Of a DNA stretch of 32,000 bases, positions 2,823 through 12,500 are shown piece after piece. The first letter of the stretch is position 1; each line of letters opens with the position of its first letter. The translations under genes were made by a program, and so were the position numbers. This stretch comes from Wallemia ichthyophaga EXF-994 (Eukaryota; Fungi; Basidiomycota): assembly GCF_000400465.1 (NCBI RefSeq), contig NW_008806288.1:150001-182000 (forward strand), written 5' to 3'. The notes under the pieces are model-generated. The model worked only from the letters and a program-made list of their open reading frames with translations. It was not told the origin of the DNA and did no database searches.

Positions 2823-3289
2823 CTGATCGCCGTGGGTATCTTGATGGCGGTGTGAGTTAAAGAGAGGATATTAATTTTGGTAGAAATAGTTCTGGATTGT
2901 GGGTGCTGTGAGTGGGCTGGTTCTAAGAACGGGAGTATGAGTATGGATGTGTCTCGCTCAGAGCCCGAGTGTGGATGTGCACACGTCGGCGAATACGAGT
3001 GGATCGAGGATATGGTGACTGTGTGAGGCTAATCAGGCAGCTGCAATTACACCAGTGTTGCCCATCTTTCAATACACAGTAAACCGAGCGAGATGGATAG
3101 ATTACCGCACAAATTGGTTTAGAGGCAGGTATTTATATGAATATACAATAACAATATCTTAGAAGCCATATATACCAAAATAAATTAAAATAAATTAAAT
3201 TGAATTTGCACTTGACTGTAATTTTTGATGATGAGCCTCAGCCGCTGGGCAGCGTTCTTCGTCTTCGTCTTGAGCACTCAGATTTAAAT

Positions 3290-3645
3290 ATGGTAAAATA
3301 GACGAAACAAAACCAATTAAATCTGACACTGTGTTCAGGACGCACCAGCCGCCAACAAGCAGCCAGTCAAGCTCGCAAAGGTAACCAAGGTGGGTGGATT
3401 GTTAGGCTTGTAGGCGCTGCTGATCCAAGCTATAAAGGTCCTTGGTAGAACTGGATCCCGTGGTGGTATCACTCAAGTCCGCGTTGAATTCTTGGACGAC
3501 ACCTCCCGTTCAATCATCCGTAACGTCAAGGGTCCTGTCCGTGAATCTGACATCCTTGCATTGCTCGAATCTGAGAGAGAAGCACGGTGAGTGTGTGTGT
3601 GTGTATCATAATCCAAACTAACTCCCTCCCAGTCGTCTCCGTTAA
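3290..3645 (+). CDS. RPS28: 40S ribosomal protein S28 (eS28); 4 exons, first exon is ATG only
   Basis: Introns 3293-3338, 3390-3437 and 3587-3632 give [71 protein letters not shown], a classic eS28 sequence. Absent from the ORF track. Confidence 0.97.
3591..3604 (+). repeat. (GT)n microsatellite in RPS28 intron 3
   Basis: gtgtgtgtgtgtgt directly after the GTGA donor bases. Confidence 0.7.
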
Positions 3646-3697
3646 AAATTTTATCCAAGATGTAAATTGGAAACGATGTATATTCTTTGAGCTCGGC

Positions 3698-3886
3698 ATG
3701 ATATTCGCTGCTTTATCTTTGTTTGTGATTGGTGTGGCTGGATTAGCAACAGGCTTAGTCCTAGTCTTCACGGCGAAATCAAATTTATACCTAGAAACTG
3801 TTGTATACTCTGTTGGTCTTGTACCGCTGCTGACGATCTGGGTCATTGCACACTACGTCGCCTGGGAGCTATTCAAGCATAACTAG
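3698..3886 (+). CDS. 62-aa two-TM microprotein, probable PIG-Y/Eri1 subunit of GPI-GlcNAc transferase
   Basis: MIFAALSLFVIGVAGLATGLVLVF...YSVGLVPLLTIWVIAHYVAWELFKHN*: two hydrophobic segments and a C-terminal (W)xLFxHN ending like human PIG-Y (WMGIKLFRHN). Recognised from memory of the family. Confidence 0.65.
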   Translation: MIFAALSLFVIGVAGLATGLVLVFTAKSNLYLETVVYSVGLVPLLTIWVIAHYVAWELFKHN

Positions 3887-3903
3887 TTGTCTCATTCACT
3901 AAT

Positions 3904-5054
3904 ATGGATACGTGTCCGTCGTTTCTCGGCGCTACTCCCACACCCACTCACCCCGCCCAGCCAGAGAATACATCGCCATCGGTTTAGAAGGCTCAGCTAA
4001 TAAATTAGGCGCAGGGATAGTCAGGCACAACAAAGATGGCTCTGTCGACGTTCTCTCCAATCCCCGCCACACATACATCACTCCCCCAGGCTCTGGCTTC
4101 CTCCCTGCAGACACTGCTCGACATCACAAAGCGTGGCTCGTGAAGATTATCCAGAAATCCCTCTTCGACGCTGAGCTCTCACTTGAAGACGTCGACTGCA
4201 TTTGTTTCACTAAAGGTCCGGGTATGGGTGCTCCCCTCACTGCCGTCGCTATGGTAGCCAGGACGCTCAGTCTGCTCTACAGCAAACCACTCGTCGGCGT
4301 GAACCACTGCGTTGGTCATATAGAGATGGGCAGACTCATCACAGGTGCGCAGAACCCTATTGTGCTCTATGTGTCTGGCGGCAATACTCAAGTCATCGCC
4401 TACTCCCAACAGCGTTACAGAATATTCGGTGAAACACTCGATATCGCAGTCGGTAACTGCCTCGATAGATTTGCGAGGGTTATCGGGTTGCCTAACGATC
4501 CTAGCCCCGGTTTCAACATCGAGCAAGCTGCTAAAAAAGGTAATAAACTGCTTAAACTCCCTTACACCACTAAAGGTATGGATATATCCCTATCTGGCCT
4601 CCTCACTGCCACATCCACCTACACCACCAAACCGCAATTCAAATCAGCTGCAGAGACTCAAGATGACTTTACAAAAGAAGATCTCTGCTTCACTCTTCAA
4701 GAAGTGGCATTCGCTATGTTGGTTGAGACTACAGAGAGAGCTATGGCACATGTAGGGTCGAAGGAAGTGCTTATTGTTGGTGGTGTCGGCTGCAATAAGC
4801 GTTTACAAGAGATGATGGCAATAATGGCTGAGGAAAGAGGTGGGAAAGTGTTTGCGACGGATATGAGGTGAGTTGTGGAGATTTTGGTATTTTATCACTC
4901 ACAAATATTCAGATTCTGCATCGACAATGGTCTTATGATAGCCCAAGCTGGTCTTTTACAGCATAGAATGGGTCAGGTGACACCACTTGAGCAATCCAAC
5001 TGCAAGCAGCGGTTCAGGACAGACGAGGTATTGGTGTCGTGGAGGAGTGACTGA
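3904..5054 (+). CDS. KAE1: tRNA N6-threonylcarbamoyltransferase Kae1/OSGEP (KEOPS); 3 exons
   Basis: Motifs [55 protein letters not shown] 3904 is brought into frame by intron 3914-3960 (MDTSREYIAIG); second intron 4868-4912; TGA at 5052-5054. Confidence 0.95.
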
Positions 5055-5155
5055 GTGAATAACTGAACAACTGAATAACGAATTGTACATATGCATTAAT
5101 AATATCCAAGCATTCTTGGTTTATTTACATCTTATCGTTTCTAACATCATCACGC

Positions 5156-5688
5156 ATGTCTTCCGGCTTTGTCAGTTCTGGCAGCGTAAACAGCAAAGAT
5201 GGCGACAAAGAGTGGAAAGAAGCGTACGAGAGGCTACAGAAGGAGCCAGAGGAGAACAAGGCCAAGGAAGAGGAGGATAAGCGACCACTAGCAGAGCAAC
5301 TATACGAACGCAAGGCAGAAAAAGACGCTGAATTTGAGCAGAAGACAAAGTTTTCGAGTGAGTAACGCATGCGAGTAACGCTCAGCTGTATCAACACGCT
5401 CACAACTCACCTCACACACCAGACCAGTTCCGCGGTCTTGAACCAGACGAAGCAGGATACCTCAATGATCTCAACGCAGGCAAGAACACCGAGACGAAGA
5501 GACGGCGAGAGGAGGAGGAGGAAGAAATAGCGCAGTTCAAGCAGGCGAGGACGAGTTCACAGCCCACGCATCCACCACGCTCACGCTCAACCAAACCACC
5601 ACCACCAGCCAACACACCCCGCACACCCAAACCACCCAAGACAAACAAGGTGAAAGGCAGTTTGAAAGGTGTAGTAAAGAAATTGTAA
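5156..5688 (+). CDS. FYV6: FAM192A/Fyv6 (NIP30)-family protein; 2 exons
   Basis: RPLAEQLYERKAEKDAEFEQKTKFS|NQFRGLEPDEAGYL resembles the FAM192A/Fyv6 N-terminal domain. Intron 5358-5422; frame stays open to ...LKGVVKKL TAA (5686-5688). Confidence 0.75.
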
Positions 5689-5689
5689 A

Positions 5690-7728
5690 ATGGCGATAAA
5701 TATCGACGACGAACATACACCGCGAGGACCGATTGCAATCAGCGACGATAGCTCAGATGATGATCAAGGTGATGTTGTAGTGGCGACGTACAAAGCAGCA
5801 GCCAGCAAGCGAGACGATGAGCGCAAACGAGAAGACAGACGCATGGGGTGTGAGGCGCGTGAGGCGCCTGGCGTTAAAGGGGAGACGGTCGATGATCGCT
5901 TGGAGAACAGCACACACACACGCACGCGGAAATCATCGAAACCTCCGCCATCGCCATCGCCGTCTCTCCCCAAGATGAAGATGAAGAAAATGGATACATC
6001 TAAGATACTGGGACAGCTCCTCAAAGAGAAGACAACAAATGATGAGCTCAGAGCGGGTGCTGCGGGCCAGGAGGATGCTTACAGGAGATTTCTGGAGAAA
6101 GAGCGGCAGCTTAATGAGGAAAAGAAACCTGAGGTTGAGGCGCTACAGGGTGAAGAAGACGCGGTTAGTTCAGACGACGATGAATTTCTCATCCACACAC
6201 CTCGATTGGAAGTGGATGGGAATGAAAATGAAAACGATGAAAATGAGCACATCAACACACACACATACAAAAATGTCGTAGCTAATGTGCTCACTACCGA
6301 CAAAGCTACGATGAAAAAGGACAAACAATACAAAAAGCACAAACCCAACTACAGCTTCTTCGATATTGCCCAATACCGCGATCCCAATACAGACACGATA
6401 ATCGACGCGTTGCTCGAGACGGTGCTAACTACAAGCGACCTTTCTCCCCTCCAAAAAGACTGCTTGGTGGAGTACAAGCGGGTGCGTTCAGAGGGTGACA
6501 TGGACAAAGAGCGTGTGTACATGTCAGTGATAGTGCGCACTGTCATTGCACACACTCGACCTCCAGTAAGTATAATGCACTTGATATTCCATTTGAGTGA
6601 GTTGCATTCTTTATGTAGTGAGTATGCTCAGCTGACGACCTACCCCTGTCAGTGATTATGCATGAACATATACCCTTCAAAGACACTGCTCTGCGCATCC
6701 TCCAAGATACCCTGCCTCAATATGACCGTGAAAGCGCTCCATTTGGATTAGCTGATCTGCTAGCACCCCTCACCTACCTCGGCATGTCGATTGCGACCGA
6801 GAGCCTTATCTACGGGGAGAGCAGGGAGAGTGGGAGGAGTGAGGAGATGGGAATGGACACACCAAATCTCACGAAAAAGGATAAAGCGGAGCTGATAGGA
6901 CAGAGTGCGCAGCGTATAAAGATACTCTCGCGACTGATCCCGCTAATGCATTCCATGACATCACTTTCGCTACTCGGTACCGGCGACACTAGCGGGCTCT
7001 TCACGACGATGGTGCTACTCTTGATGGACAGATCACTGAGCAGCATCTACCCCCAGATAGCGGCGTGTGCGAGCAATGCACTCGACTCCATCGGAAGCGG
7101 AAGGAGTGAGATTGTCACCCACAACACCCACGACGCCCTCAAAATTGATCTTCATGTCCTCGCAAATATCCTCAACGCGGCTTCGGGACATGCTCCCGCT
7201 TTCCAGCTCAGCATGTTGGAGATATTCCCGTCAGGTACACTACGCGCAATGCGCATGCGCAGATGGCTGGCATGGGCTATATTGCTCGATGGGAAACATG
7301 AGCCTATCGATACGCAGAAATATGAAAAATCACCAAACATCCAGCCCATAATAAAACAATTGAAGGATGTGGATGGTAAATTTACCGTCAATCAGCATAC
7401 AGACTATGACAATCTCACCGATTGCGTTGAAATACTTTCAATAGTGCTGACAGATTTGGAAACTTACCTCATCGAAGAGAGACATATGATAAAGTTCAAA
7501 CCGAGTATGAGTTTTGTAGATGGGGATGGTGATAATGATAGTGATAAAGATAGCATAGCCCTTCTCATCACTCTTCTCCGCTCACTCAGTGGGATGATCG
7601 TAGATACACGTAACGCTGATCTCGAAAAGAGCAGATGCAAGGATGTTTTACAAAGGCTGGAAATGAGGCTGTATTGGCAGCGCAAGACATTTGTGCAGAA
7701 TATGCAGATAGATTTGCAGAACAGGTAA
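5690..7728 (+). CDS. Uncharacterised protein of about 660 aa: acidic/disordered N-terminus, alpha-helical C-terminal half; 2 exons
   Basis: ORFs 5690..6655 and 6652..7728 are joined in frame by a 56-nt intron 6597-6652 (GTGAGT..CTGAC..CAG; HLIFHL|MIMHEH). Confidence 0.75.
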
Positions 7729-7818
7729 CTTGTCCAGTGTGTAATTTGTTTAGTTTGCATAAAGTATTTATTAGTCTTTCATACCACTAAAACTTGCAAA
7801 CCATTGGGAAAAAGCATG

Positions 7819-9179
7819 CTAAGAAGATTCGTTATACAACACTTGGTGTAATCGCACACGCTCGTAAATCCTATAAAGACTGACAATAAGGTTGACGAGG
7901 TCTGAGGGTGTGTGTTAGTAGTGAAAAAGATACTAGACTGCAATTGCAATTGCGTTTACGTTTGCAAACTTACACAAAACCATCCCAACAAACACCAGTC
8001 CTATGAGAGCACCGAGATAGTTGCACATGGTACCCTGCTCAATTTCATTGATGAGAGAGTCGGTAGTACGTTCGTTAGCCTGTGTGACATTAGACCACCA
8101 GCTTTGTAAAGACATGAGCTTATCATAACACCGCTAAAAATACCACAACTCACGCTGACTTGGTGCTGCAACTGAGGAGGGAAGTGAAGTAATTATCAAA
8201 CACAAGCGACAGCTCAGCGGACCAGAAGCAAATAAATACCAAATCGAGAAGAGTGTGAGCCATTTTAGAGCGAATGCCCCAAATACCGATAGGACGACCG
8301 TAGAAATACTCCAGATATATAGACACCATAACGTGTGTGAGAGTCATAGGTGCGAAAATGATGCCGATGATAGCGCCCGCGCCAGAAATACCGACTACAC
8401 CATGTCTGCCCTCGAGCAAGCGAAGACGAATGCACACAGCGAGTGTAGCAGTAGTGAAACCGAGATTCAAGCTTCTGAACAAAAGAGGTACGTATGCGGA
8501 ATGAAGAAGAAATTTACGCAGCTTATCTTTTTTAGTACGTCTTCCCAATTTGCGTCGTCGATAGAGAGCTGCATTGTCGAGTTCCTTTTTCGCTAGTCTG
8601 TTGTGTGATCTCAGCGTGGGGTGTTGCTGGGAAGACGTGCTAGGACGTTCAATGAAGCTATCGTCGAAAGAGGACAGCTGGGAGCGGGGAGGATGCATCT
8701 GGTGCGTCTGGTCGTGCAATTGGGCCAGATTTGAAGGCCCTATTCTAGCACTAGGACTTGCGCTGCCATCGTGATCGCTATCGGAAGACGCTCGCATCGG
8801 GTTTATCGGGCTCGACGTAGGCTTCTCTCTTTCCCTGTCTCTGTCTCTTTCTCTGTCTCTCTCCTTCTCTTTTAGCTTCGCAGGTAGCGTCAGCTTCCAC
8901 CACTTGAGATCGGCACTGGTCGCTTGCGAATGCGTTGGGTATAGCTGGTGGGTGAGGTCTGTGGTGGAGGCGTGGAAGAGCTCAACAGGGCCAGTGCGCC
9001 CATGCTCTTCATACTCGTCGTGCGGCTGGCTCGTTGACGGTTCATCACCAGCCCATGCTTGAAGACTATGTCAGCCGTGTGTTCGTGCTGGCGTACACCA
9101 CAATTAACGCAGACTTACGCGGGACGAGTATTATTTTGTCATTTGTCGATTTATTCCCGCGCTGGCGCGTGGAAGACAT
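7819..9179 (-). CDS. SRF1: Regulator of phospholipase D, Srf1-like multi-TM protein; 4 exons
   Basis: Reconstructed with introns 9118-9058, 8153-8102 and 7973-7902. Contains VPPWA, KFLLHSAYVPLLFRSLN, YLEYFYGRPIGIW, LLDLVFICFWSAELSLVFDNY and a terminal IVSLYRIYERV, typical of fungal Srf1-like proteins. Confidence 0.75.
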
Positions 9180-11946: not shown

Positions 11947-12500
11947 TTCTCCAGCTTTCGTCGTGGTGTTTATCAGAGAATGGCGTCTGTGCGTGGGGGA
12001 GAATTCGGGGGAACTGCTGATAATTTTAAACGTTTAATTGAATTTAACCATTGTATTACGATACGCGTATTCTTCATTCGATATCATTCATATCACTCTA
12101 CATCTCTATATCACCCACCTCTACAAGCAGAAGCACAACGAGCAAATGATTTAGAGATGAAGCCATACACAACAGTCACACCACTCTCATGATACCCATT
12201 CACGCACAAAAAATGAATATTATGCAATTTAAATTTTTCAATCGTTGCTCAAGAAGGATTTCACTAGGCGTGATTCTTCCCTTCGACTAGGACCCCAAGT
12301 ATCTAAAGGTAAGAGAGGAAACAATAGGGGGAGTATAAGTGAGTGTGGATTGTGGTAGCTGTGGATTTTATACGCATTTTAAGTTTTTAACTGGGCGAAT
12401 TGGAGGATTATCAGGTTTAAAAGCAGGTAGAAGGGAAGACACAATCCAGCCACTCCCACTCCCCCTAAATCCCCAAACAACCACTCACTCATATCCCAGA

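Follow-up and report, generated by a model that had tools for sequence, protein, structure and literature searches.

Five genes lie head-to-tail on the + strand at positions 3290 to 7728 of the window, as we call the whole 32,000-nucleotide stretch of the Wallemia ichthyophaga EXF-994 genome that was analysed. They encode functionally unrelated products: the ribosomal protein RPS28, a small membrane protein resembling the GPI-anchor subunit PIG-Y, the tRNA t6A enzyme KAE1, an FYV6/FAM192A protein and a protein of unknown function, g5. We conclude that the run is probably a real, conserved product of extreme Wallemia compaction and consists of successive RNA polymerase II units that abut or overlap, not of one polycistron. 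An earlier note on this DNA had described a same-strand run of these five genes, and models rebuilt on the + strand bear it out, with stop-to-ATG gaps of exactly 52, 17, 101 and 1 nt. All five models are open, start with ATG and have GT..AG introns of 45–65 nt.

We compared the run in five Wallemia lineages, namely the window, L004, L005, L002 and L012, together with a second strain (L001) whose gaps are identical to those of the window. Equally small gaps are kept in all five lineages, ranging over 49–59, 1–17, 46–101 and −1 to 4 nt at the successive junctions; those between PIG-Y and KAE1 are 17, 1, 9, 1 and 1 nt. The synteny of the run is common to the window and W. mellicola, and the composition of the window agrees with that of W. 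ichthyophaga-like genomes. Wallemia genomes are about 9.6 Mb in size and about 74% coding, the average spacer between coding sequences works out at ~370 nt from the figures published for W. ichthyophaga, and the annotated same-strand spacers elsewhere near the W. mellicola locus measure 171–584 nt, one of them hiding an unannotated gene. Because the gaps are conserved across lineages with saturated synonymous sites (pS 0.5–0.87), and typical spacers are far larger, the comparison indicates that the tight-gap pattern exceeds chance. Synonymous sites at the gene ends showed no excess conservation that would mark embedded promoters or poly(A) signals.

The head gene, RPS28 (3290..3645, + strand; exons 3290-3292, 3339-3389, 3438-3586 and 3633-3645), encodes 71 aa (Pfam Ribosomal_S28e, E=1.9e-31) with 99–100% amino-acid identity in the other lineages, and its exon 1 is the start codon alone. 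A block located 55–90 nt before its ATG (3200..3235, + strand), TTGAATTTGC.C.TGA.TGTAATTTTTGA.GA, is near-invariant in five lineages though the flanks are unalignable, and is likely to be the RPS28 core promoter. The 52-nt spacer that follows the gene contains a 21-nt block, TGGAAACGATGTATATTCTTT (3668..3688, + strand), which is identical in five lineages except at one position (G/T) and is as conserved as the adjacent RPS28 coding exon. No supported RNA structure and no Rfam match were found for this block. It is probably the RPS28 3′-end signal, of the UGUAUAU type, and/or a TATA-like promoter element of the next unit; TGTATAT-type motifs occur directly past the stops of RPS28, KAE1 and HVA22, the last a gene on the opposite strand.

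The second gene (3698..3886, + strand) encodes a small membrane protein of 62 aa, with two predicted hydrophobic helices and the C-terminus WELFKHN. Its length is exactly 62 codons in five lineages, and the dN/dS values of 0.09–0.18 against the nearer lineages L004 and L005 indicate purifying selection in those comparisons, the values against W. mellicola-type lineages being 0.46–0.50. Pfam PIG-Y (PF15159) was the top family for three of the four orthologues and was matched over its full length (profile positions 4/5–69 of 69), with scores of 9–20.5 bits that lie below the Pfam gathering score of 25 bits (E 8.6e-4 to 3.4; 8.6e-4 to 0.049, still sub-threshold, where PIG-Y was the top family). 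As the match is sub-threshold, we keep the label ‘PIG-Y-like’; a profile search for a PDB relative of this protein found none.

KAE1, the tRNA t6A synthase (3904..5054, + strand; exons 3904-3911, 3965-4867 and 4913-5054; 350 aa; Pfam TsaD, E=2.4e-80), is 72–77% identical to Agaricomycete KAE1 proteins among the matches listed. Its exon 1 is an 8-nt micro-exon, and all lineages have a counterpart of 8–10 nt followed by an intron of 45–53 nt. Only with this exon spliced in does an in-frame ATG precede the essential GLEGSANK N-terminus. The micro-exon is also present in the JGI model XP_006959681.1.

FYV6 (5156..5688, + strand; exons 5156-5357 and 5423-5688) encodes 155 aa matching Pfam FAM192A_Fyv6_N from residue 5 (E=1.5e-24), and the model is conserved in L004, L002 and L012. 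The last gene, g5 (5690..7728, + strand; exons 5690-6596 and 6653-7728), encodes 660 aa; the acidic stretch IAISDDSSDDD in its N-terminal part resembles a SIM, and its C-terminal half is helical. Its dN/dS is 0.28; it matches only W. mellicola (the best match, 40% identity within a fused model) and, weakly and C-terminally, Trametes punicea. Searches returned no Pfam family for g5 and no Foldseek match in the PDB, its AlphaFold model being poor (pLDDT 54). Conservation of the N-terminus, M[AV]INID...GPI[AV]ISD.SD, begins right at the first ATG; the reading frame is closed by a stop 5 codons upstream, and no other in-frame ATG is found ahead of the conserved block. The stop/start junction between FYV6 and g5 (5686..5692, + strand) has a 1-nt spacer, TAAaATG, in the window and in L001, and reads TAGtaaaATG in L004, TAATG in L002 and TGATG in L012. 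The window and L004 share a frame offset of +1, L002 and L012 one of −1, and the relative frame of PIG-Y and KAE1 likewise varies. Programmed frameshifting or stop read-through as a source of FYV6-g5 or PIG-Y-KAE1 fusions was rejected on the ground that the frame relation is not fixed across lineages.

These features bear on whether the tight gaps could be annotation artefacts, with the real starts at internal ATGs or with neighbouring ORFs joined by frameshifting or read-through. Automated W. mellicola models do fuse neighbours: 24 genome annotations carry a 1077-aa chimera of RPS28, KAE1, FYV6 and g5. The fused models, however, leave PIG-Y out and bridge stop codons with spurious introns. 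An internal start would deprive KAE1 of its conserved N-terminal 90 residues, and the conserved g5 block lies ahead of any internal Met; the KAE1 and g5 start codons are thus shown to be correct. As the micro-exon splice is also seen in RNA (contig L011, below) and the frames vary at both tight junctions, an artefact is extremely improbable.

The RNA evidence comes mainly from L011, an RNA-seq contig (SRR23314750) from a W. mellicola-like species, which is a sister lineage and not the window species. Aligned to positions 5773–7085 of genomic L012, it has 2 mismatches and the 45-nt KAE1 intron removed, and it runs unbroken from PIG-Y codon 3 through all of spliced KAE1, the ORFs being 1 nt apart, so that the leader of the KAE1 RNA is the PIG-Y ORF. 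Its first base lies 2 nt past the second PIG-Y ATG, the PIG-Y start codon itself being absent, and it shows no extension into RPS28. At its other end, ~18 non-templated A residues stand where the genome has AACAGTCATG; the tail begins 5–7 nt before the FYV6 ATG and ~30 nt downstream of an AATTGTAYAT-type element. The corresponding element past the KAE1 stop in the window, AATTGTACATAT (5081..5092, + strand), occurs as AATTGTAYAT / TTGTATTTATACATA in all lineages and is likely to be the KAE1 poly(A) efficiency element. Since a non-templated tail precedes the FYV6 ATG, KAE1 and FYV6 are separate messages in the W. mellicola-like lineage, and transcription of FYV6 must start within the 3′ end of KAE1 or directly at it. 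PIG-Y and KAE1 appear to share an RNA in that lineage and look dicistronic; L011, like the contig L019 described below, is a short-read assembly, which merges overlapping transcripts, so its continuity is no proof of single molecules with both ORFs.

The earlier note had implied a single operon-like unit, which would be one mRNA that begins at the RPS28 promoter and covers the whole run, with ribosomes getting to the downstream ORFs by leaky scanning or reinitiation. An obvious conserved promoter block upstream is seen for RPS28 alone, no spacer has room for both a conventional terminator and a promoter, and gene order and gaps are conserved, all of which would fit such a unit. It is nevertheless contradicted by the poly(A) tail that L011, from the W. 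mellicola-like lineage, carries just ahead of FYV6, and by the fact that this contig stops short of RPS28, though RPS28 mRNA should be far more abundant. Moreover, the internal ATGs of KAE1 (17–19) and FYV6 (2–4) would block scanning to later ORFs, and the five genes, which are functionally unrelated, need very different expression levels. The single-operon reading is therefore largely refuted, and we consider it highly improbable. The two alternatives that the note had offered, polycistronic mRNAs and promoters embedded in upstream coding sequences, fare better when taken junction by junction: the evidence suggests that each applies at a different one, the former at PIG-Y/KAE1 and the latter at KAE1/FYV6.

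The start codons of the PIG-Y/KAE1 pair differ in context. The PIG-Y AUG has g, c, g, a and a at −3 and never G at +4 in the five lineages, whereas the KAE1 AUG is preceded by A at −3 throughout and followed by G at +4 in three lineages. The PIG-Y ORF of the window has no internal ATG in any frame, and neither do those of L004 and L005, which makes it AUG-free in three of the five lineages; L002 has two. This scarcity was not significant against synonymous shuffles (P=0.22–0.43).

Alternatively, all five genes might be strictly monocistronic, with cap sites in upstream genes and poly(A) sites in the next gene, the contigs being products of the merging of overlapping RNAs in short-read de Bruijn assembly. 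Overlapping units are a known outcome of compaction in microsporidia and nucleomorphs, and the KAE1 poly(A) site does map directly against the next ATG. In L019, furthermore, HVA22 is continuous with the next ORF, and its 188 codons, with internal Met codons, make leaky scanning implausible there. On the other hand, a PIG-Y poly(A) site inside KAE1 should break the contig, as happens at the KAE1 3′ end, but L011 is unbroken, and a PIG-Y ORF that is AUG-free in three lineages, with a weaker AUG context than KAE1, fits one shared leader. We regard strict monocistrony as unlikely.

For the FYV6/g5 junction, a two-gene mRNA might be considered, from which g5 would be translated by coupled termination-reinitiation at UAAaAUG, UAAUG or UGAUG. 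Across the lineages the junction sequence changes but the stop/start distance stays within −1 to 4 nt, FYV6 has no internal Met codon, and the g5 AUG, always with a purine at −3 and mostly with G at +4, has a stronger context than the FYV6 AUG, which never has G at +4. Coupled termination-reinitiation at UAAUG is known from segment 7 of influenza B virus. For hypovirus CHV1, as presented in PMC2699510, coupling at UAAUG is documented and the stop and start likewise overlap or abut; the W. mellicola FYV6/g5 junction has the same UAAUG. The viral UAAUG cases, however, need defined upstream RNA elements, and none was detected at FYV6/g5; nor is there extra nucleotide-level conservation upstream of the junction. 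FYV6 is also ~150 codons long, and ribosomes that have translated a long ORF normally reinitiate very inefficiently unless a dedicated upstream element assists them. Deletion bias alone would shrink a neutral spacer between constrained ORFs to ~0. On this comparison, coupling appears rather doubtful.

A second tight run is present on the opposite strand of the window, where an RRM/MLLE gene is followed after 24 nt by HVA22 and after a further 46 nt by a gene for a 348-aa membrane protein; junctions of 3–59 nt occur in this run. The sister-species RNA contig L019 is continuous and spliced; its first base lies at the stop codon of the preceding gene, 6 nt ahead of the HVA22 ATG, and it crosses a 13-nt junction from HVA22 into the fully spliced 348-aa ORF. 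Neither L011 nor L019 reaches into the large upstream gene. Given this second run in the same window, tight packing looks like a local habit or general feature of this very compact genome and not a special operon, which qualifies the earlier description of the arrangement as unusual.

The chain of abutting or overlapping units that we favour is in keeping with spacers too short for a 3′ UTR, a promoter and a 5′ UTR (−1 to 101 nt at the four junctions, 3–59 nt in the second run) and with RNA ends that map inside or against neighbours (the KAE1 poly(A) site, the PIG-Y ORF leader and the start of L019). RPS28 would be made from its own conserved promoter and end at or just inside the PIG-Y start, via the invariant UGUAUAU-containing spacer block. 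The PIG-Y/KAE1 RNA would start in or just past that spacer, with a very short leader, and ribosomes would either use the weaker-context PIG-Y AUG or scan past it to the KAE1 AUG, which they could reach because three of five lineages have no AUG within the PIG-Y ORF. FYV6 transcription would start in the last part of KAE1, no further downstream than the KAE1 cleavage site, so that only KAE1 transcripts carry the full KAE1 poly(A) signal. The g5 RNA might come from a start site embedded in the FYV6 coding sequence, which we slightly favour, or from an FYV6-g5 two-gene RNA.

Overlapping transcription units are reportedly a feature of the compacted genomes of microsporidia and nucleomorphs, in work attributed to Williams and co-workers in 2005. 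As there, spacers in Wallemia are too short for UTRs, transcripts begin or end in neighbours, and the neighbours are functionally unrelated, the arrangement being a by-product of genome shrinkage. Wallemia differs in being a free-living basidiomycete that splices normally and has ~5,000 genes, and in that its poly(A) site lies precisely against the next start codon instead of deep in the next gene. In Agaricomycetes, same-strand neighbours likewise appear on one RNA, but these polycistronic transcripts represent read-through between genes that have independent transcripts as well, and the configuration dwindles beyond that group (Gordon et al. 2015, PMC4503453). The Wallemia spacers, in contrast, are 1–17 nt long and conserved, and the gene pair is absent in Plicaturopsis crispa and Ceratobasidium, whose KAE1 loci have no PIG-Y ORF upstream and no adjoining FYV6.

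Green algae have dicistronic nuclear loci (Gallaher et al. 2021, PMC7896298; leaky-scanning study, PMC11291117) that resemble the run in having a small, often membrane-protein ORF first (OST4 and TOM22 there, PIG-Y here), conserved inter-ORF distances from overlap to <100 nt, and, apparently, a weaker start context for ORF 1 and few or no AUGs ahead of the second start. Single-molecule reads and in vivo mutagenesis have established in the algae that mRNAs are shared and that leaky scanning takes place, whereas the Wallemia case draws on a short-read contig of a sister species, and AUG depletion is not significant in Wallemia. A fungal counterpart of the green-algal polycistronic system is possible but not likely: Wallemia would as a matter of routine express core genes from two-gene mRNAs that are conserved and obligate (PIG-Y+KAE1, FYV6+g5, HVA22+membrane protein), and ribosomes would get to the second ORF either by UAAUG/UGAUG-coupled reinitiation or by leaky scanning that begins at a cap site with almost no leader. 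A human bicistronic PYURF-PIGY transcript is cited in PMC13303939. In that account, PIG-Y, of the tiny GPI-GlcNAc-transferase subunit family, shares an mRNA with an unrelated protein, as it may in Wallemia (where the family match is sub-threshold), and is the downstream ORF, whereas the Wallemia ORF is upstream with KAE1 as its partner. The two arrangements must be independent.

Tight packing of this kind makes gene finders fuse neighbours and miss small genes; neither the PIG-Y-like nor the HVA22 ORF has an entry among NCBI-sourced records. Fusions and missed small genes probably explain part of the reported difference in gene count, 4475 versus 5284, for the species. With a poly(A) site as close as 5–7 nt to the next start, and with stop/start distances that have stayed at −1 to 4 nt through deep divergence, the question arises of how a normal Pol II and cap-scanning system separates or shares adjoining messages, and whether the same AT-rich elements act as both 3′-end signal and promoter. 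If the two-gene RNAs are real, Wallemia would offer a fungus that is tractable and can be cultured as a model of dicistronic translation in eukaryotes, and a second, independent case of PIG-Y produced from a shared mRNA.

We rebuilt the models of the five plus-strand genes at 3290-7728 by translation and splice-site inspection. The run comprises RPS28 (71 aa, supported by Pfam S28e), whose first exon is the ATG alone (3290-3292); a 62-aa PIG-Y-like ORF encoding a two-helix membrane protein (hereafter PIG-Y); KAE1 (350 aa, Pfam TsaD/Kae1), which has an 8-nt first exon (3904-3911) followed by a 53-nt intron; a FYV6/FAM192A-family gene (155 aa, Pfam FAM192A_Fyv6_N; hereafter FYV6); and g5 (660 aa), which starts at 5690 and stops at 7728. 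The stop-to-start distances in these models, 52, 17, 101 and 1 nt, agreed exactly with those from which the earlier note had read the run as operon-like. The Pfam match of the PIG-Y ORF was full-length and below threshold, and a PDB profile search gave no match. For g5, neither Pfam nor Foldseek gave a match, and the AlphaFold model was poor (pLDDT 54); in a protein search, the best match of g5 was a Wallemia mellicola protein, and beyond this only a weak match of its C-terminal part to Trametes punicea was detected. At the N-terminus of g5 (5690-5780) a hydrophobic-acidic stretch is conserved (GPIAISDDSSDDD; in W. mellicola IVISDSSDEEDD) that in sequence looks like a SUMO-interaction motif; the remainder of g5 is helical. 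Elsewhere in the window, another start-codon micro-exon may exist in a UBP15-like gene on the minus strand, which possibly begins with ATG followed directly by gtgagg (about 18634-18632), and the RPL9 5′ leader seems to hold an intron (about 12334-12499).

The run was recovered from another strain of the window species (L001, L003) and from four further lineages, namely L004 (Logan SRR25399871), L005-L007 (ENA metagenome contigs covering the RPS28-KAE1 part only), L002 (W. mellicola, syntenic with the window across the whole neighbourhood) and L012 (a W. mellicola/sebi-like strain). Nucleotide identity to the window was about 73% for L004 and about 78% for L005-L007. Comparison of spacer lengths at these orthologous loci, as the earlier note had suggested, showed that the small gaps are kept in five lineages, the window included. 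In the order window, L004, L005, L002 and L012, the RPS28-PIG-Y gap measured 52, 54, 49, 59 and 59 nt, and the PIG-Y-KAE1 gap 17, 1, 9, 1 and 1 nt; for the window, L004, L002 and L012, the KAE1-FYV6 gap measured 101, 46, 49 and 49 nt, and the FYV6-g5 gap 1, 4, -1 and -1 nt. Synonymous sites between the lineages are near or at saturation (pS 0.5-0.87). The dN/dS of PIG-Y was 0.09-0.18 against L004 and L005 and 0.46-0.50 against the W. mellicola-type lineages; the purifying selection seen against the nearer lineages indicates that PIG-Y is a real gene. In two Agaricomycetes, Plicaturopsis crispa and Ceratobasidium, no PIG-Y ORF was found upstream of KAE1 and, judged on these two KAE1 loci, the gene arrangement appears to be absent outside Wallemia. 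KAE1 and RPS28 of P. crispa lie about 1.9 kb apart on opposite strands (L008 8001-11756), a proximity that may be left over from an older linkage of the two genes.

The start codons that define the gaps hold up. In all five lineages, the KAE1 ATG lies 1-17 nt past the PIG-Y stop and opens an exon of 8-10 nt, after which an intron of 45-53 nt restores the frame; the JGI model of W. mellicola CBS 633.66 begins likewise (MHNSKDYIAIG). KAE1 cannot start elsewhere: if the micro-exon is left out, translation from the next in-frame ATG loses about 90 conserved N-terminal residues. The g5 peptide M[AV]INID...GPI[AV]ISD.SD..D is conserved starting at the first ATG; no earlier in-frame ATG is present, and a stop codon lies five codons upstream. 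The conserved N-termini thus rule out the reading, named in the earlier note as a refutation, in which the downstream genes begin at later, internal ATGs. Fusion of the abutting ORFs by frameshifting or read-through is also excluded, because their relative frames vary among the lineages.

RNA evidence came from P0137, a 346-aa KAE1 ORF readable only from spliced RNA, which lies in the 90%-identity cluster of a fused W. mellicola protein (see below). Its source is L011 (Logan SRR23314750_41240, 1284 nt), a short-read RNA contig that derives not from the window species but from its W. mellicola-like sister lineage and that bears on the PIG-Y-KAE1 and KAE1-FYV6 junctions. L011 aligned to its genomic counterpart (L012 5773-7085) with two mismatches and with the 45-nt KAE1 intron absent, showing that the micro-exon splice is real in this lineage. 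The contig starts 2 nt past the second PIG-Y ATG, and hence lacks a PIG-Y ATG, and continues through TAGaATG into KAE1; the leader of the KAE1 RNA in this lineage is the PIG-Y ORF. L011 ends with a stretch of about 18 A in place of the genomic AACAGTCATG. In this lineage, cleavage and polyadenylation of the KAE1 RNA thus take place 5-7 nt ahead of the FYV6 ATG, leaving a 3′ UTR of 42-44 nt that contains TTGTATTTATACATA.

A poly(A) tail at this position means that the run is not one transcription unit, and the single operon-like unit implied by the earlier note is not borne out in the sister lineage. The two alternatives proposed there, shared polycistronic mRNAs or promoters embedded in upstream coding sequence, appear to apply to different junctions: RNA continuity from PIG-Y to KAE1 speaks for a shared RNA, and KAE1 and FYV6 do not share one, so that FYV6 transcription must initiate separately, at or within the 3′ end of KAE1. 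Since short-read contigs merge overlapping transcripts, the RNA continuity is no proof of single molecules. Long-read data for W. mellicola are public: a PacBio Iso-Seq run from Planococcus citri females (SRR15093694) reportedly includes W. mellicola contaminant transcripts by the thousands (PMC10960109). Exact look-ups of the spliced RPS28, KAE1, FYV6 and g5 sequences of three lineages returned no match, nor were the spliced RPS28 3′ end and the RPS28/PIG-Y spacer block detected when JGI metagenome contigs were scanned for each; with FYV6 exon 1 as HMMER query, a library of representatives at 50% identity yielded a single, unspliced genomic ORF. In W. mellicola (L002 11691-11739; P0140), an in-frame ATG 1 nt past the KAE1 stop (TAAaATG) would lengthen FYV6 by 16 residues; this ATG precedes the mapped KAE1 poly(A) site and is conserved neither in the window nor in L004.

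Two non-coding plus-strand blocks are essentially invariant among the lineages: one about 60 nt 5′ of the RPS28 ATG, and the RPS28/PIG-Y spacer block, TG[G/T]AAACGATGTATATTCTTT. For the spacer, RNAalifold gave a weak helix with zero covariation, and Rfam a chance-level match only. A motif scan indicated that the RPS28-promoter-like motif is not general within the window, and synonymous conservation at gene ends, examined for embedded promoters or poly(A) signals, showed no clear excess. TGTATAT-type motifs come after the stop codons of RPS28, KAE1 and an HVA22-family gene, in agreement with UGUA and UAUAUA being upstream elements of fungal poly(A) signals. In the window species only, the words AAGATGTAAAT and GAAACGAT in the KAE1/FYV6 spacer (5100-5131, minus) are shared with the RPS28/PIG-Y spacer (3655-3690, plus), which may be chance. 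In the window, L004 and L005, two very short ORFs, ATGTAA and ATGTATATTCTTTGA, also lie in the latter spacer (3655-3697); the second of them ends TAAaATG against the PIG-Y start in W. mellicola. These ORFs are relevant only if transcripts begin upstream of them.

We propose that RPS28 is a stand-alone, highly expressed unit whose 3′-end signal would be the invariant spacer block, and that the PIG-Y/KAE1 RNA would begin within or just past this block. The start of L011 lies about 43 nt past TGTATATT, which would be plausible as the distance from a TATA element to a start site. Given the proposed near-absent leader, a PIG-Y ORF free of AUGs (in three lineages), the weaker context of the PIG-Y start and the optimal context of the KAE1 start, both PIG-Y and KAE1 could then be produced through leaky scanning or start-site heterogeneity. 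Synonymous shuffling showed no significant ATG depletion in RPS28, PIG-Y or FYV6. At the FYV6-g5 junction, either the g5 start site would be embedded in FYV6 exon 2, or one RNA would serve both genes by termination-reinitiation at UAAaAUG/UAAUG/UGAUG. We slightly favour the embedded start site, since FYV6 has about 150 codons and 2-4 out-of-frame AUGs and lacks a conserved upstream element.

Scanning of the window for other tight junctions revealed a second run, on the minus strand: an RRM+MLLE protein gene (11946-9946), a TB2/DP1/HVA22-family gene (9921-9226, intron 9763-9719) and a gene that encodes a multi-pass membrane protein of 348 aa (from an ATG at 9179 to a stop at about 7819), with spacers of 24 and 46 nt in the window and 3 and 13 nt in the W. 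mellicola lineage. The 188-aa HVA22 ORF (L002 16378-16944) has no NCBI-sourced entry and occupies an annotated 584-nt intergenic gap in W. mellicola. L019, an RNA contig from the same RNA-seq run and sister lineage as L011, opens with TAGacaATG, at the upstream gene's stop codon, and contains the entire HVA22 ORF, 13 nt and the 348-aa ORF with 4/4 introns removed. Tight same-strand junctions with RNA continuity thus recur here and are not peculiar to RPS28-g5. Published figures put Wallemia genomes at about 9.6-9.8 Mb, of which about 74% is coding, with introns of 55-61 nt; the G+C content of the window, 44-50%, matches the W. ichthyophaga side of the genus better than W. mellicola. The convergent g5 and 348-aa genes have stops only 90 nt apart (7728-7819), so close that their 3′ UTRs must be very short or else overlap; in W. 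mellicola, g5 converges across 42 nt on another gene, of 257 aa, that is absent in the window.

A full-text literature search on polycistronic or overlapping expression in Wallemia found no relevant paper. Among known situations, the nearest are green-algal dicistronic loci, which the leaky scanning or start-site heterogeneity proposed for PIG-Y/KAE1 would resemble, the human PYURF-PIGY transcript and overlapping transcription in compacted genomes. Agaricomycete read-through transcripts are less close; their genes are transcribed independently too (PMC4503453). In MAKER models of W. mellicola population genomes, four of the five genes (RPS28, KAE1, FYV6 and g5) are fused to give a single 'hypothetical protein' of 1077 aa (TIB99212.1 and relatives; L002 10001-14092), the PIG-Y ORF is omitted and the HVA22 ORF is left unannotated. 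This mis-annotation, a practical consequence of tight packing, probably reflects how such spacing systematically affects MAKER/Augustus models.
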